A stretch of 18,075 nt of DNA. It comes from Azolla caroliniana (taxonomy: Eukaryota; Plantae; Polypodiophyta). The stretch is taken from positions 1-18,075 of the forward strand of contig JBHGNT010000669.1 of the NCBI GenBank assembly GCA_043228905.1, given 5' to 3'. Numbering within the stretch: the stretch's first letter is position 1; the number at the start of each line of letters is the position of its first letter. Made by a program: the position numbers and the translations under genes. Below the pieces are notes generated by a model. That model worked only from the letters and a program-made list of their open reading frames with translations, made no database searches and was not told the origin of the DNA. Positions 4,599 through 17,159 of the stretch are shown one piece after another.

Positions 4599-4963
4599 GA
4601 GGTGGGGTTAGCAAATCAAGGAGTACCATGCAGGCCTAATAGACGAGGAAAATAGGAATTAGAAAAAGCACCCCCTAATAGAAAGGAAACACCTCCTACA
4701 ATCAAGAAAATTAATGCCAGGCTTGAAAGAGAACTTAATGCCATAGAAATAACCGTAATATTCACGTCCCAAAACAAGGAGGATTAGTGCTTTGTTTCAA
4801 ATCACATGTTAAGTGGAAGAGGGATCTTGGAATCTCCCTAATACCCCAAAATTGCATAGAAGAAGAAGAAGAAGACTAAGCCCAAACCTTAAATTCATTT
4901 CTTCCCTTCCGTTCTCCTCCCGCACTCCAAAGGAAACCCCCCCCAAAAAATGAATAACAAATT

Positions 4964-5237
4964 TGTTGGGAAATAGGTCTATCCGGATGGGAAGGAAAGC
5001 ACGAGCCGAATCGGATGGAGTCGATAGGTAACTCGGTCAAGGCCGATAGGCCGAGGCCAAAAAATTGACTGACCCATAACCGATCGATAACCAATTTGGC
5101 TATTATCGGCTGAATCCAACTAGGCTATATTTGTAAATAGCCTAGATGTGCCCATTATGGCTATATTTGTAAATATAAATATAGTTAGGGCAAGTAGTTA
5201 TGATGTGAGAGCGAATGAAGCGAATCAATAGTGTAAC

Positions 5238-5285
<48 letters not shown>

Positions 5286-5540
5286 GTATAACTCCTCTGT
5301 AACCGTCTGTGGATGAGGAAGAACTCAAGGTTGTTGTCTTGTTGTTTCTTATTGTACATTCTTCTTACCTTAGTCACTCGTTCGGAGTTTGTGGACTCTC
5401 GTGGTATTTCCCTTTCAGGGTTTCCACGTTAAAAATACTTTTTCCTTTGTGTCAGTGCATCATTTATGTTATTTCAGTTTTCTATCATTCTCATTTGTGC
5501 TTGATAATTGATTGTGGCCGCTCCCATATTCATCATAACA
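4964..5540 (+). mobile_element. Diverged family C LTR in plus orientation, containing (GA)n at 5239-5282
   Basis: Starts TGTTGGGAAATAGGTCTATCCGGATGGGA (reverse complement of the end of 3756-4415); shares the GGCTATATTTGTAAATAGCC, ctcgtgg..agggtttccacgt and gtggccg blocks. No TSD seen. Confidence 0.8.
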
Positions 5541-5785
5541 AACACTCCATTCACTCCTACCTAGCCAAGCCAAACCTCCTACCTTTTCACCCTAGTAAAT
5601 TCGTTAACTACATGGGACATGCTCCTTTACTCATCATATTATTTTTCACATCCTTATACATCCAATCTATCACATCTTGAAGCCTTTTCCATTATTTTTC
5701 TACTCTTGGACCCGCCACGTCACAATAACATAATGTCACTACGATTTGAAAGTATATATATATATACCATGGTAGTGCAAATAGG

Positions 5786-5965
5786 ATTTGAAACCATTTT
5801 TGAATTTTTATGATAATTTTAGCATGTAAGAGAAGAGCATGTATATTGTTGCTATTGTAATTGCACTATGCCACAACAACATAATTGCACTACAATTCTT
5901 AGGATGATTTGAAACCATTTTCAATTCATTATGATACTTTTAGCATATAAGAGAAGAGCATGTAT
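5786..5965. repeat. Two ~59-bp direct repeats, period 121 bp
   Basis: ATTTGAAACCATTTT...TAGCATRTAAGAGAAGAGCATGTAT at 5786-5844 and 5907-5965. Confidence 0.85.
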
Positions 5966-6049
5966 TCAAACGATATAATTAAGTATGCATGAATAAATCA
6001 AGAGGATTATTAAGTATTGTTTTGTTTGTGAAGAACTGTTATCAAACGC

Positions 6050-6830
6050 AAGTTGTTTTAAGGGATACTTTTGGTTGACATATTGTTATTGAGATTTTCT
6101 GTAAGGATCAACTATTATGGATAGTAGGAGTGTATGCACGAAATGTTGCTAATAAAAGAAGATTATTGTCGTAATCTTTGTTGGCTACTCTTAGAGTTGA
6201 CAAACTAGGACTATTGAGGGGGGATCTCAATCCTTGTTGTGACAATGATTAGTCAACTTCAGTGCATTCTATCATGGATACTTTGGAATTATGTGCTTGG
6301 GATCAAATTATAGGTGAATATCGAGGGACCCTAGTTATATTTTTCATTTCATATATGAGCTAGTTGATTACTCTTTTCTCAAAAATTTGTCTAAAGATGA
6401 GGTGTGCTCTAGATATTTCAAATAATAATGTGTGTAAAGTATCTAGATATTATGGAAGGCAAAATGTATGTTTGAAGAATCAAATGTAACATGTACTAAC
6501 TATTTTGATAGAGAGATATAAGTGCATAGTCAATATCTGGCGAGATGGTGTAGATTCATTGAAAATCCAATCTATTCTATCAAAAACATCAACCATGGAT
6601 GCAAAAATAAAGAGTAATTAACAAATTTGTGAGCATAAGTTGAAGCAAGTGGTTATGGATAATAATTGTCAAAACACATTCTTTCTTCAATTCTCTTCAT
6701 GAGACCTGTGTTAAATGTACTATGGCTAAGAGTATATTTGGGCAATTAGATTATTTTGATCCACATATCATTGTTTGAGAATGTGAGGATCATTTCACAC
6801 ATTTATTTCATTCAGATTGGAATATTCATG
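6050..6830 (+). mobile_element. Heavily decayed L1-like LINE ORF2 (APE endonuclease) relic
   Basis: From 6109 in one frame: QLLWIVGVYARNVANKRRLLS*SLL...GLLRGDLNPCC...CAWDQ, matching L1 EN motifs (I/V)YAPN, R..LW and GDFN. A weak GD.N.KFF-like motif lies near 6655-6690. Not in the ORF track because of stops. Confidence 0.65.
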
Positions 6831-7364
6831 AGCATGTCAAATAAGCTACTAACATCTGTGTTTGGGATATAGGAAATCATGTAATTCATTACTTGTGCTC
6901 GCCCTTGAGTCGATTACTATTCGTAAATATGTTCATCAAGGATGCACTTTCAGTCTTTTCTTGTTTGCATGATTAACCGCCCTCTTTTAATACATTTTCA
7001 TTATTAGTCAGCATTGGATTGGGTATTAGATGGGATTTCTTTACCATCAAGAAATTCTTGTGTTTAAGCCTTAGTGGATGATCATGTTATACATTTGGGG
7101 ACACATTCATATATGTTGCAAAAGTTATGTAAGTGTGCTATCTGTTTGCTATTGTTTCAGATTCAAAATATAAATATGAGGAAATGAAATCTTATTTCAT
7201 GTACAAAGAAGAACTTAGAGAAGGTTGGATGGTTAGAGAGTCGACAAATGCATAGTAGAATCATCAACAGTGAATGATTGCCACATCTTCTCAGGATATG
7301 AGCTCCCACATCACACTGGCATTATGTTAAGCACTCGTATATACCAACAGACTATTTCCTTCAG

Positions 7365-7412
7365 TTATATGATCTTTACACTCAATAATGTCGATAAAGG
7401 AAATGGTCGGTC
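7365..7412 (-). CDS. Candidate terminal coding exon of 7TM gene (DRPFPLSTLLSVKII*)
   Basis: Acceptor ttcttttgaccctatgtag|GAC; followed by 3'UTR-like sequence. Confidence 0.35.
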   Translation of the reverse strand, partial: DRPFPLSTLLSVKII

Positions 7413-7765
7413 CTACATAGGGTCAAAAGAATGAAGTATATACAATACAAGGAGGTGTTCAATGAAACACTTTCATTTTTTAGGAAAAAGAAAGAAATCA
7501 TCGAAATACCTTTCTTCACCAAGTGTATACGTTATCACTGCAACAAAGAAAGGAAATAAATCAAATGTCATTTAATTTGTCAAGAGAATCAACCCGAAAT
7601 TTTCACAGCCATAAAATATATTGAAAACATTCCAGTATTGATAGGCCCTTACAAGACAGCTTAAAACACGCAATTGCAAAGTATGCTAGGTTAACTTAAA
7701 ACATTTAACTAAAATATGCCCCAGACAAAAGAAACTAAAACTGTAATAAATTTCCTTGGTTTTAC

Positions 7766-7803
7766 TTCTGGGCCAATCAAGAATGCCATTACTCTACTCA
7801 GAA
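7766..7803 (-). CDS. Candidate small downstream exon of 7TM gene
   Basis: Strong acceptor cttgttttgctttacag|; gives F-stop (phase 0) or VLSRVMAFLIGPE with donor |GTAAAA (phase 1). Confidence 0.4.
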
Positions 7804-8065
7804 CTGTAAAGCAAAACAAGGCATCGTGCGTCAAAGCAGGATATGAAAGCATTGCATATAAATAATATCAAAGAAATTGTATAGATAGATAGTTAGGTAG
7901 CTAATAGTGTGTTTTCTAAGCTTTAAGGTCATGGGTATCACAAAAAAAAAAACATCTCTATTTTGATCTTGACACCCAGACAGAGTTGAAGAAAACCATT
8001 GAGGAAAAGCAATCATGGCATCATGATTTTGTATGAGGCAAATGCTAGACAGTAAAACTAAGAAA

Positions 8066-10453
8066 TCAATACAGATTTGCGAAGAGAGAATGTACACATA
8101 CACCAAGTGTTGAAGGCTTGTGCTCCAATGCATCACACTGCACTTCCAAAGCATTCACCTCTTCTTCAAGCTCCTTTATCTTTTGTTCGTATTCCTGTGC
8201 CTCTCTCCTGACCTTGTTTAGTTGTGTTTCCATCTTCAAAAAGGTGCCGGATGATTGTGTCCTACAAGTGAGCATGCCAGCCATATGACAGTTTTTTACC
8301 ACAAAACAGCAAAAAAATGAAGAAAGACGGGAATCTGAATCCTCAAGTTCAGAGTTTATGATGACTCAAATCTCAGGCTTCCAATTCAATTTGCTAAAGA
8401 GAAGAAGAGATAAGTTTTGTTATTTGAGATGAGAATAAAGAAGCATATATTAGTTGAGCAAAAGGTAGTGTACCTTTCAAGGTCACTAGGTAACCTTCTG
8501 AGCTCATCATTGAACTTCTCCAAATATGCATCCCGATTAAATATCACATTATATATGACAACACCATTTCTGCCCCAGAAGGCATAGAAAACAACACCAG
8601 CTGCAGCTATAGATAAGAAACACCGACCGGTGGATTCATTATATACATCCGTCTGAAGAGTTACCAGAGATAAGAGGAACAGGAAAACTGAGAGCACACC
8701 ACACCTCCGAATCACCCTGCAAGACGGACAGTTTAGATTTGATGTTCGATCATATTATATATGGAAGAAAGTTTAGATATTAATCGGTTTGTGGCATCTC
8801 ATGTACACATTGATCTTGCAAAAACAACAAAGAATGATGACAGAAAGAAATGAAATGGCTGTCAGTAACTCTGCAAGCATGTACATCAGCTTGTGATCAA
8901 ATTGAGGCAGAAGCTTTACAGTTAGGATTAACATTCGGTTAATTCGTTTCAACACTATCCTGCTCTGCTTCAGGCATGAAACACTAAGTTCAGTTTGACA
9001 TGATGATTGTGGTCAATAGGAATTTCAGGCACAATCTCTGTAGTAGTAGTAGATTGGTTTTTAATGCTGGATCAATTTTTAGATCTACTGGATGTAGTTT
9101 TACGTTTAAATTACAAGAAAAAGTCTCGTATTTCTTTTTGTCTTCTCTACATAGGAATGAGACATGCTTGCGAGGTGTAAGTTAATTCACTACTACAAAT
9201 TAATATGGACCGTCATCAACACGATGAAGAGAAGGGATATATATAGTACAGATGTAATGAGCCCAAGATTCTATGGGGACAAACGAAGAAAGCAATTTCC
9301 ATCAATATCAATGTCCTATAAATAGAAAGAACACAACTACTACTTGAATAATAGGCCAAGACCATGAAATGAATGTTTGTATTCCTTTTTGATAAAACCT
9401 GAATCCTTCATTCTTAATGTAACAGTGTTTTTTTTTTGTTTTTTCTATTAAGTACATGGGCTGCCAAATACACACCTGTATTCATTAAACTGAGCCATGG
9501 TGTTCCGAAGTCTGAATCCGAAACCCATTAAAATAAGATAATTTATAAACTGAAGAAGCACCATCCCAAAAACCCATACCGGCTTGGAAACAAATACACA
9601 GTGTCCTTTATTCGGATCTCCTGGCATGGTTTCAAACCTGATGCATAAATACACACACAAAAATACACTTGATTAATTCCATACTTAAATAAACATCTAT
9701 CTTTACACACACAAATTCAAATTTGGTTTGATCATTTCTTTGTAAATAATTTCTGTGTTGTGGATTTTCACTTCACCACTGAGGTTTAGCATCAATAATT
9801 TAATTTATGTGACTACAAAACCCTTTCTTTTACCTTCAAACCAACTCACAAAGCATCAATCAAACTAAAAGCATCATTATAGGCACCCTTTTCTCCTCAA
9901 AAAATGTTTCAAAGGTCTACTAAACAAGAGTGACGATGATGAGGACGAGGACGAGGACGACCACTTACTTGAGCACTTTTTTGCTTTTTATGGTGGCGGC
10001 GATTGCAAAGGTGATGAAAGGGAGCGAGAGTGGCAGAATAAAAACATATTCATGGATACAAGTCAACGATTTCCATACAAAGATCTGATATAGGGTGAAA
10101 AACCGAACCGTTAAACAATTGAGCCAAAGAGAGTATCCAAAGCAAGCTTGGATCCAAAAGGTCCAAAGAATGCATAAGTCGAGGCCCGAATGTCGGCTCC
10201 TAGCAAAATGGTTATTCACAATAAGGCTGGAGAGGACCCACATCAAGCCACCGATGGAGCTGAGGAGAGTGAGGGGCAAGCTTTTGGTCTTGATCGGGCG
10301 GTATCCTCGGTAATAGAAGAGGACGAGGTTACCCAATAGCATGAGGAAGCCGCCCGCAGAGATGATGGAGACAGTGATGTAGTCGGGGGCGGAGGGGGGT
10401 TTGGGAAAGTGGGGGGTGCTTTCTCGCGGGGTAGAAGAATCAGTGATTGACAT
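8066..10453 (-). CDS. Spliced gene: 7TM protein related to the 7TM domain of plant 7TM-RGS (RGS1-like)/class C GPCR core, with a C-terminal coiled coil and no RGS box. Exons 10453-9969, 9637-9476, 8716-8474, 8261-(8102/8104 or read-through to stop at 8066)
   Basis: Three GT-AG introns, all phase 2, join four ORF-track fragments into one frame (350 codons to 8102; 361 aa if read through). In-frame stop two codons upstream of the ATG. Seven hydrophobic helices. By-eye matches to AtRGS1 as remembered: PDYITVSI~SDYVAVAI, CILWTFWIQACFGYSL..LYQIFVWK~CYLWAVWIEGPLGFGL..LYFIFVKK, FNEYR~FDELR. Confidence 0.85.
8102..8261 (-). CDS. Exon 4 of 7TM gene (cytoplasmic coiled coil); 3' boundary uncertain
   Basis: Acceptor ttgtag|G in correct phase; encodes TQSSGTFLKMETQLNKVRREAQEYEQKIKELEEEVNALEVQCDALEHKPSTLG. 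Overlapping donors G|GTGTAT and GGT|GTATGT. Confidence 0.8.
8474..8716 (-). CDS. Exon 3 of 7TM gene (TM6, TM7, helix-8-like segment)
   Basis: Acceptor ttgcag|G, donor AG|GTACAC, 243 nt, frame-preserving. Confidence 0.88.
9476..9637 (-). CDS. Exon 2 of 7TM gene (ECL2 with Cys, TM5, ICL3 FNEYR)
   Basis: Acceptor atcag|G, donor AG|GTGTGT, 162 nt, frame-preserving. Confidence 0.88.
9969..10453 (-). CDS. Exon 1 of 7TM gene (N-tail, TM1-TM4)
   Basis: ORF 9965-10453; consensus donor AA|GTAAGT at 9968. Confidence 0.9.
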
Positions 10454-10579
10454 TCTTCAGTCTTCTCTGATCTTCTTGTACTCCTCCCCTGCAGGTCTTG
10501 GTATATAATATTCCCACAGAGAGTATGTATCTGAATATGCTGCTCTATGCAGCCACTGTACGAGGGAGACTTTATGATT

Positions 10580-10658
10580 GACTGGACTGGACTGGACTGG
10601 ACTGGACTGGACTGGACTGGATTGGACTGGACCTGCTGCTGCTGCTGCTGCTGCTGCT
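10580..10658. repeat. Compound microsatellite (ACTGG)10 (one variant unit) plus (CTG)8 upstream of the 7TM ATG
   Basis: Directly visible, ~130-200 bp 5' of the start codon. Confidence 0.95.
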
Positions 10659-10885
10659 TGCTACCAAAGCAATCGATTATGAATCATTGAGAAGGAAGGG
10701 ATCAGAGCACTCATCAACATGTATGTAGTCGGGCATATTTCTGTCTGCTCCCCAGTGGGGCTCCACGTCTTGTCTCCTCGCCTCTTGCCTCTCTGTTCCT
10801 TCCTTTCCCTTTTTTTGTGTGTTGTGTGGCCGTCGTTGCTGCTATAAAACATGCTGAAGTCAATGGAATGACTAAGATTAGTTAC

Positions 10886-10889
<4 letters not shown>

Positions 10890-10917
<28 letters not shown>

Positions 10918-16330: not shown

Positions 16331-16485
16331 TGTCGAATACGAGTGTATAATGGCCGTATTCACACTATCCCTTTGGACAACCCAAGTTTGGGCTATTTCT
16401 GTAAATAGCATAAAGGGCAGTTGCCCTAGGATAGTTACTATATAAAGTGACTTCGTAACCTTTAGTGGAGGGGGGTTGTCATTTG
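16331..16485 (+). mobile_element. Truncated family B LTR
   Basis: TGTCGAATA...TATTCACACTA..TTGGACAA...GTTGCCCTA...TATATAA...GTAACC aligns to 3276-3401. Confidence 0.75.
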
Positions 16486-17159
16486 TAACCTCCATTGCGC
16501 GCCGATCCGCCTCGTTTGCCACGACTATGGGGCCTATCTTCGTCCATGTACAACATCTTGTTGTCGGTGTGCGTACTTGTTGACGCACCCACGTGATTTT
16601 CCTCCACGAGCAACATCGACTGAAGCTCGAAGAACGAAAGCGTAATCCCCCTTGTGCAGACGGCCGTTCGGAATGCTCCGAACTTTGACTCTAACCCTCC
16701 AAGACAAACCTGCACCATTTCGTCCTCCTCGACATTCACGTTGATGGAGGTGAGGGAATCGCAGATCTCCTTGATTCGGGCTGTGTAATCGGCCACAGAC
16801 TGATCTTTCTGTCGGACATTGCTGAGCTCTTATCTAAGTTGCAACTTCTTGCCCATTGTGCTAGCGGAAAAAATCCTCTTGAGATTCGCCCATGCATTCT
16901 TTGGCGTCTTAGCATCCCGAATGTAGCTCAAGAGCTGGTCTCTCACACAGGACGCGAAGCAGTAAAGAACTCTGCTTGCCGCTTGTTCCCAAGCCGGAAA
17001 GTCTTTGTGTGTCGATTCGGGTGCTGCATCATTAGCACCTTCAATATAACTCCAGCAACCATTACCAAGTTGATACTGGTGCATCTTGTACGAACAAGAT
17101 GCGTAGTTGCTCCTGTCGAGCTTCTCAATCGGTAGTGAGCTTCCCATGCATCTGTCCAT
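16479..17159 (-). pseudogene. Copia gag (Retrotran_gag_2/UBN2-type), one in-frame stop, 3'-truncated
   Basis: EKLDRSNYAS.SYKM...KTPKNAWANLK...LQLR*ELSN...SVADYTARIKEICDSL...MVQVCLGGL...LQSMLLVEE; the two ORF-track pieces share a frame. Confidence 0.92.

Follow-up and report, generated by a model that had tools for sequence, protein, structure and literature searches.

A spliced Azolla caroliniana gene for a seven-helix protein with a coiled-coil tail and no RGS domain belongs to a family found from Klebsormidium to conifers

The prevailing view of plant G-protein signaling is that plants are without receptors of GPCR (G protein-coupled receptor) type, that 7TM-RGS, a regulator of G-protein signaling (RGS) with seven transmembrane segments, is their only seven-helix regulator, and that liverworts and grasses are without any membrane regulator (PMC3386157, PMC3718340). 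A gene in an 18,075-nt stretch of the fern Azolla caroliniana (hereafter the window, by which we mean that whole stretch) raises the question of whether this view is complete, as a preliminary description of the sequence had placed there an orphan receptor-like gene with a membrane core of the RGS1/class C type and a coiled coil in place of the RGS box. Is this an ordinary 7TM-RGS gene whose RGS exons lie out of sight, a decaying copy, or a representative of a separate family, and what might such a family do? We find that the locus holds an intact gene of the fern, which is both spliced and transcribed. We put at roughly 0.6 the probability that its product is a member of an RGS-less, class C-type family with seven transmembrane helices (TM1 to TM7) and a coiled coil, acting as a dimeric receptor-like regulator or scaffold whose likeliest partner is the heterotrimeric G protein.

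One minus-strand gene spans approximately 10700 to 7200 of the window in five exons, and all of the features listed by the earlier reader were found in the sequence on that strand. The gene model was read from Logan contigs of four public runs (X1, X2, X4 and X7) aligned to window positions 4950-10900, and it comprises the following features, in which UTR stands for untranslated region, ICL and ECL for intracellular and extracellular loop, and aa for amino acids.

10454..10701, minus strand: 5' UTR; an identical contig of X1 covers it to 10571, and contigs of X2 and X7 to 10701.
9969..10453, minus strand: exon 1, with the ATG, an N-terminus of ~24 aa, TM1, ICL1 (YRPIKTKS), TM2, ECL1, the TM3 Cys, TM3, ICL2 and TM4; it ends in phase 2.
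9638..9968, minus strand: intron 1, 331 nt, GT..AG; contig joint 9635>9967 (cut +2).
9476..9637, minus strand: exon 2, 162 nt, with ECL2 and its conserved Cys (GHC), TM5, and ICL3 with RLRN...FNEY.
8717..9475, minus strand: intron 2, 759 nt, GT..AG; joint 8715>9475 (cut +1).
8474..8716, minus strand: exon 3, 243 nt, with TM6, ECL3 (an NES glycosylation-type site), TM7 (GRCFL...FY.FW.RN) and a cytoplasmic helix-8-like segment.
8262..8473, minus strand: intron 3, 212 nt, GT..AG; joint 8260>8473 (cut +1).
8102..8261, minus strand: exon 4, the linker and coiled coil; the last coding exon, ending in phase 0 after ...PSTLG; joint 7537>8102.
8117..8233, minus strand: the coiled coil within exon 4, ~39 aa, with 11 consecutive a/d core positions and generic coiled-coil Pfam matches.
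7538..8101, minus strand: intron 4, 564 nt, GT..AG; joint 7537>8102 in X1 and X7 (CT..AC on the plus strand).
7204..7537, minus strand: exon 5, with the TGA stop at 7537-7535 followed by the 3' UTR, from contigs of X1 and X7; the transcript end at ~7204 is approximate.

The first three introns are cleanly absent from contigs of X1 (with 0 mismatches), X2 and X7, that is, from three runs of three studies; run X4, probably the DNA of a relative, spans one intron contiguously. Runs from three studies were taken as RNA by guess only, and we read them as RNA-derived because the exact loss of four GT..AG introns across three studies is the pattern expected of mRNA. The phase-consistent exons 1-3 and GT..AG introns of the preliminary description thus stand to the nucleotide. 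Its 3' end does not. Contigs of X1 and X7 join 8102|8101 to 7538|7537, so that exon 4 stops at 8102; the stretch with which the earlier model closed, 11 codons (8101-8069) and a stop codon (8066-8068), lies within intron 4. In place of a four-exon gene ending at 8066 with a product of ~361 aa, the spliced contigs give a TGA in a fifth exon and a predicted product of 350 aa (161 + 1 + 53 + 1 + 80 + 1 + 53, the single residues being the AAG, AGG and AGG codons split by introns 1-3, all of which are in phase 2).

At the ends of the transcript we note two further observations. Within the 5' UTR, positions 10580-10658 of the window hold microsatellites, (GACTG)x10.6 and (CTG)x8.7 on the plus strand and hence (CAGTC)n and (CAG)n on the transcript, and contigs break there; a search of the window for an upstream 5' exon, made with the loose contig end at 10701, gave no match, and the X2 and X7 contigs at that point probably diverge from the window rather than enter a further exon. 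In the 3' UTR a minor extra joint at 7411-7509, seen only in run X7 at a depth of 3.7, would put an exon junction downstream of the stop codon.

The predicted product begins with ~24 aa before TM1, passes through seven hydrophobic helices and a helix-8-like segment, and closes with a coiled coil of ~40 aa. It carries a Cys at the top of TM3 (LDLC) and a Cys in ECL2 (GHC), both in columns without variation among 13 relatives (numbered C86 and C163 in the Pteridium orthologue P0109), and these conserved cysteines would form a TM3-ECL2 disulfide. The best-conserved blocks of the family are ICL1/TM2, TM3, the ICL3/TM6 junction and TM7/helix 8, and the motifs YRPIK.KS (ICL1) and FNE[YF]R (below TM6) fall within them. 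The motifs pointed out previously, namely the two cysteines, the ICL1 motif, RLRN...FNEYR and the coiled coil, are thus all in the sequence. A large extracellular ligand-binding module (a Venus flytrap, with or without a Cys-rich domain) was not found in the ~24 residues before TM1, and the same is true across the family. The a/d core series of the tail runs M, L, V, A, Y, I, L, V, L, C, L at a spacing of 3-4 (~5.5 heptads), with mostly beta-branched or small residues at a and mostly Leu at d, a pattern that by classic rules favours a parallel dimer. A prediction of the 53-aa tail as a homodimer scored 0.14 where the mark is 0.32, below the level that is read as an answer, and speaks neither for nor against pairing.

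Several lines of evidence agree on the absence of an RGS domain, as the preliminary description had claimed. A Pfam search of the exons one by one returned no RGS match in any exon, and a tblastn comparison of five RGS-bearing relatives with the whole 18-kb window matched the membrane exons only. The spliced contigs carry a stop codon directly after exon 4 and have no joint to an RGS exon; the transcript ends before the transposon field, and within the aligned region (window from 4950) no RNA-like contig depth was seen below ~7139 except for a short fragment at 5380-5423. The complete open reading frames (ORFs) of orthologues, taken from transcriptomes and genomes of at least 10 species, likewise end after the coiled coil, and no member of the family matched the RGS profile.

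To place the gene among known proteins we searched 1.84 billion proteins with exon 1 (phmmer, 108 matches) and added further family members from word-index searches with orthologues and from a family-profile search. The best exon-1 matches, 350-400 aa long, lack an RGS domain, and all four coding exons match full-length relatives collinearly. These relatives, 347-433 aa in length and here called family A, include Klebsormidium nitens and K. subtile, the liverworts Marchantia polymorpha (a single copy, MPTK1_1g05640 / Mp1g05640) and Riccia fluitans, the lycophytes Selaginella moellendorffii (LOC9657419) and Diphasiastrum complanatum (two genes), Psilotum nudum, the ferns Pteridium, Adiantum and Ceratopteris, and the conifers Cryptomeria japonica and Picea sitchensis (D5ACM8), together with several transcript assemblies. 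With the TM profile, none of the 18 full-length members falls below 384 bits, and no other protein exceeds 176. The gene can therefore no longer be called an orphan, as it belongs to a family of RGS-less full-length proteins conserved from Klebsormidium to conifers.

Exon 1 alone also retrieves RGS1 proteins, from Psilotum (P0035, E 8.3e-9) and Solanaceae (P0045, E 3.3e-7). No flowering-plant or moss member of family A appeared in the exon-1, orthologue or family-profile searches, and the only flowering-plant matches were canonical RGS1 proteins (E ~3e-7). Entries of family A are labelled "hypothetical" or "uncharacterised" or bear automatic names. Reviews of plant G-protein evolution list 7TM-RGS alone, and we found no description of family A in the literature searched, most subscription journals being outside the searched text. 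It appears that neither family A nor its distribution has been described, nor its kinship with RGS1 and class C, though the sequences themselves are already public as hypothetical entries. This agrees with the core of the preliminary description, an undescribed RGS-less 7TM family with a coiled-coil tail.

Two side observations concern the databases. The Cryptomeria proteins P0009 and P0114 are automatically named "regulator of G-protein signaling 1" though they are RGS-less, and surveys of databases could miss the family because of this wrong name. A cluster around P0013 (P0119-P0132) consists of "hypothetical" proteins of 171-259 aa from JGI/IMG, ENA and Logan metagenome contigs (of up to 207 kb), which match TM1-4 at E 5e-18 and may stem from eukaryotic DNA within the metagenomes; one entry carries the name of an arabinose-transferase-like glycosyltransferase.

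The relation of family A to 7TM-RGS was examined in a quick maximum-likelihood tree of 98 membrane domains, in which the window is represented by exon 1 only and support is given only as values of the Shimodaira-Hasegawa-like approximate likelihood ratio test (SH-aLRT). Family A forms one clade (SH-aLRT 97) whose order follows the species tree: Klebsormidium and the transcript P0008 stand at an unresolved base, followed by liverworts, lycophytes and then Psilotum, conifers and ferns in unresolved order, and the window protein groups with the ferns (SH-aLRT 99). The sister of family A (SH-aLRT 92) is a family B of uncharacterised proteins, 352-407 aa and also with a coiled-coil C-terminus, from Riccia sorocarpa, Psilotum, Diphasiastrum and Selaginella (P0020, P0023, P0026, P0030, P0049); the two families co-occur in the last three of these genera. 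The streptophyte 7TM-RGS proteins, those of Klebsormidium, Chara, Psilotum and Solanaceae, have a clade to themselves (SH-aLRT 100), and the window protein falls outside it. Psilotum and Selaginella carry RGS1, A and B (the Selaginella RGS1 was known from PMC3386157), and Klebsormidium carries RGS and A. Because Klebsormidium, Psilotum and Selaginella have both kinds, the split between A and 7TM-RGS predates land plants. As to its root, the tree is compatible with gain as well as with loss of the RGS domain. The tails of family A are mostly net acidic and those of family B neutral to basic, with overlap; charge complementarity was considered as a sign of A-B pairing and was dropped, being a weak trend only.

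For the fold, we modelled the Pteridium orthologue P0109 with a 13-member alignment in place of the window's product, to whose exons 1-4 it is 52%, 41%, 61% and 43% identical. The model (mean predicted local distance difference test, pLDDT, 76; predicted template-modelling score, pTM, 0.66) has seven helices, with ECL2 as a hairpin, followed by a segment like helix 8 and, at the C-terminus, one long helix. Helices at 232-263 and 265-277 belong to the part encoded by exon 3, and the single long helix at 290-336 corresponds to the coiled coil. In a Foldseek comparison of this model with the PDB, class C receptors occupy all of the first 46 places. With VIA-align the closest are GPR156 (Z 23.2; 3.2 A over 250 residues) and GABA-B2 (Z 23.1), at root-mean-square deviations of 3.2-3.4 A, followed by mGlu, CaSR and GPR158 at Z 19.6-21; the whole set, Z 19.6-23.2, extends over 234-274 residues, and the top 50 rows are all class C. 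GPR156 is also the nearest Atlas cluster by language-model features (score 0.92).

Profile searches point the same way. Against Pfam 7tm_3 (PF00003, cut-off 33.5 bits) the orthologue P0003 scores 53.6 bits, P0005 scores 28.6 bits, below the cut-off, and RGS-bearing relatives score ~30 bits, just under it; PF00003 is precomputed for 9 of the 18 family A members. When the PDB was searched by sequence with the family profile and with P0003, coiled-coil look-alikes (LINE-1 ORF1p, selenoprotein S) were the only matches, none of them a class C chain; the proposed residue-by-residue correspondence of FNEYR to the FNEAK motif of class C receptors is therefore tentative. The window's own exons, searched singly, gave no membrane-family match in Pfam, 7tm_3 included, short fragments of this kind scoring low, and the membrane-family assignment therefore rests on the orthologues. 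Taken with the retrieval of plant RGS1 by exon 1 and with structural matches at Z 20-23, these results suggest that the RGS1/class C-type core proposed at the outset is right for the family and, by orthology, probably for the window's product as well.

How might such a protein work? Class C receptors act as dimers, and GABA-B pairs its subunits by C-terminal coiled coils; the face of class C receptors formed by ICL1/TM2, TM3, ICL3/TM6 and TM7/helix 8 turns toward the G protein. In the mechanism that we favour, the conserved disulfide would set an N-out/C-in topology and the tail would be cytosolic, because the cysteine pair places ECL1 and ECL2 outside. The protein may form a dimer or oligomer through its membrane domains and its coiled coil, as class C receptors do, and may pass a conformational signal to a partner, or hold one, by way of its conserved cytoplasmic face (ICL1 YRPIK.KS, ICL3/TM6 FNE[FY]R, TM7/helix 8). 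The likeliest class of partner would be the heterotrimeric G protein, toward which a protein without an RGS box could be a receptor-like regulator or scaffold, itself incapable of acting as a GTPase-activating protein (GAP).

The closest known system by sequence is plant 7TM-RGS (AtRGS1), which shares with the window gene a homologous seven-helix core, an N-terminus that is short, the cysteine pair of TM3 and ECL2 and, below TM6, an F-[DN]-E motif, and which occurs side by side with family A in streptophytes from Klebsormidium upward. The differences are equally clear. 7TM-RGS has an RGS box (PF00615), whereas the window gene has none, which makes GAP activity impossible, and has a coiled coil of ~40 aa after helix 8 instead; identity between the two is only 26-30% in TM1-4, and they fall in separate clades. 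Family A is present in liverworts, which are reported to be RGS-less (PMC3386157), and unseen in flowering plants, where RGS1 is present. The earlier suggestion that the protein is a partner or decoy for 7TM-RGS does not serve as a general function, because liverworts keep family A yet are reported to be without any RGS gene (PMC3386157 Table 1; PMC3718340).

Among animal receptors, GPR156, an orphan, is the best structural match to the orthologue, and in both the class C membrane domain stands bare, with only a very short N-terminus outside the cell. As GPR156 also lacks a Venus-flytrap domain, the lack of that module in family A does not exclude class C. Sequence identity is only 10-17%. The tail of GPR156 is long and mostly disordered. 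GABA-B (GB1/GB2) resembles the window gene in its membrane domain (GB2, Z ~23) and in a cytoplasmic coiled coil after the seventh helix, and differs in having an extracellular ligand-binding domain. Its coiled coil zips two subunits, for which the plant parallel is the presence of the paralogous families A and B, both with such tails, in Psilotum, Diphasiastrum and Selaginella. GPR158 and GPR179 are class C orphans whose membrane domains also appear in the structural comparison (Z 19.8). Unlike the plant family they carry large parts outside and inside the cell, and at the animal membrane they hold the RGS7-G-beta5 complex. They are in this respect a non-covalent counterpart of 7TM-RGS and show how a class C core could influence the G-protein cycle with no RGS box of its own; plant family A has no known or predicted RGS partner, and in liverworts no RGS is reported. 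CAND2/PMTR1 (Tmemb_40) are likewise plant seven-helix proteins, of ~300-360 aa and proposed to touch G-alpha, and belong to an unrelated family: our first guess for the window gene was CAND2/PMTR1/TPRA1 (Tmemb_40, PF10160), which was rejected when neither the exons nor ten relatives gave a Pfam match to it.

The similarity to GABA-B invites a more ambitious proposal, which we regard as a long shot: a heteromeric plant receptor of the GABA-B kind, with one subunit from family A and the other from family B zipped by their coiled coils, could regulate the G protein directly as a GPCR-type or anti-GAP regulator. Such a receptor would be the missing membrane regulator of G-alpha in RGS-less lineages, liverworts for instance, and its loss would date to the flowering-plant stem or earlier.

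Against the reading of the window gene as a functional family member that acts on G proteins stand several points, which bear on three other explanations. One of these is that the gene is an ordinary RGS1 gene with its RGS exons farther downstream, beyond the transposon field or the window. The RGS1 membrane core is indeed homologous to that of the window gene, the orthologue from Cryptomeria is labelled "regulator of G-protein signaling 1 isoform X4" by the RefSeq pipeline, and transposon insertions that split the 7TM from the RGS part are documented in Setaria (PMC3386157). Yet the spliced contigs enter an exon that opens with a stop codon, an RGS match is absent throughout the 18-kb window, none of the complete orthologue ORFs that end after the coiled coil has an RGS domain, and the family stands apart from streptophyte 7TM-RGS in the tree, three genera having both kinds. 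For the transcripts seen here this explanation is refuted, and we give it next to no likelihood overall. A different concern is that the window copy, though transcribed, has come under relaxed constraint, as a paralogue that is decaying or neofunctionalising. Its terminal branch is the longest in the fern clade (0.64, against 0.25-0.33 in other ferns), although the partial row, exon 1 only, may itself stretch that branch. Its tail beyond the coiled coil is shorter than in other ferns, and it has changed 9 of 70 near-invariant columns (those identical in at least 12 of 13 relatives); among the changes are G>C after FNEYR.IRR and Y>A in FYYFW, both non-conservative, and L>S. On the other side, the remaining 61 columns are kept, both cysteines and the main motifs among them, the frame is open, all splice sites are canonical, and three runs show correct splicing. 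Next to contigs that agree fully with the window, X2 and X7 also contain a spliced variant that is 5-10% divergent over 8102-10480 (e.g. 33 differences in the 318 nt compared of exon 1) and may be a related species, a homeologue or a paralogue. Among the best-supported differences from it we counted 17 synonymous and 16 non-synonymous codon changes at 236 synonymous and 805 non-synonymous sites, an excess of synonymous change; the rough ratio of non-synonymous to synonymous differences per site (pN/pS), which uses 40 of ~140 listed differences and is taken against contigs that may come from a relative or paralogue, comes to ~0.28 overall and to ~0.16 when the 23 variable residues at the N-terminus are left out. 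These values argue against a pseudogene, and with spliced contigs in three runs the gene is neither silent nor, by this measure, near a ratio of 1, two of the findings that the preliminary description had named as telling against it. We consider a decaying or neofunctionalising copy unlikely.

The remaining points concern structure and function rather than the state of this copy. The structural evidence comes from P0109, which is 52-61% identical in exons 1 and 3, and not from the window's spliced product. A link to G proteins is also not required, since flowering plants keep G-alpha and seem to be without family A, and since plant G-alpha is self-activating and needs no exchange factor (PMC3386157). 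It is accordingly possible, though we lean away from it, that the family is class C-like in fold with a job independent of G proteins, e.g. as a sensor or scaffold that recruits a cytosolic coiled-coil partner. Flowering plants retain G-beta-gamma and RGS1 as well as G-alpha with no family member found there, and a common fold does not prove a common function. What inclines us toward the G protein is that the nearest relatives in sequence are 7TM-RGS proteins of many eukaryotes, that the nearest relatives in structure are G protein-coupled class C receptors, and that the loops known to touch G proteins in those receptors are the most conserved parts of the family.

Two further sets of observations concern the organisation of the locus. 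Exons 2 and 3 are multiples of three between phase-2 introns, so that skipping either one keeps the frame, and shortened forms of this kind exist among the relatives: Pteridium i2 (P0001, 215 aa) joins TM1-4 directly to the coiled coil, Picea D5ACM8 (P0138) is without the exon-2 part, and Cryptomeria isoform X4 (P0009) is without the exon-3 part. No exon-skipping joints were seen among the contigs aligned to the window. The gene sits amid retroelement remnants; on the minus strand at 16479-17159 two adjacent ORFs match copia-type gag (Retrotran_gag_2, E 4e-8 and 5e-6), and other long flanking ORFs are without a Pfam match.

Taken in its setting, the window gene represents a second, equally old branch of the 7TM-RGS seven-helix stock, one that has a coiled coil where RGS1 has its GAP domain. 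Family A seems to have been overlooked because no flowering-plant member turned up; Arabidopsis and rice would lack it. The family bears on the origin of 7TM-RGS itself, that is, on whether this arose by domain fusion or by loss, with a class C-like core as its basis. We also wish to highlight Marchantia, which with its single gene (Mp1g05640) and no reported RGS makes the role of an RGS-less, class C-like plant 7TM protein directly testable.

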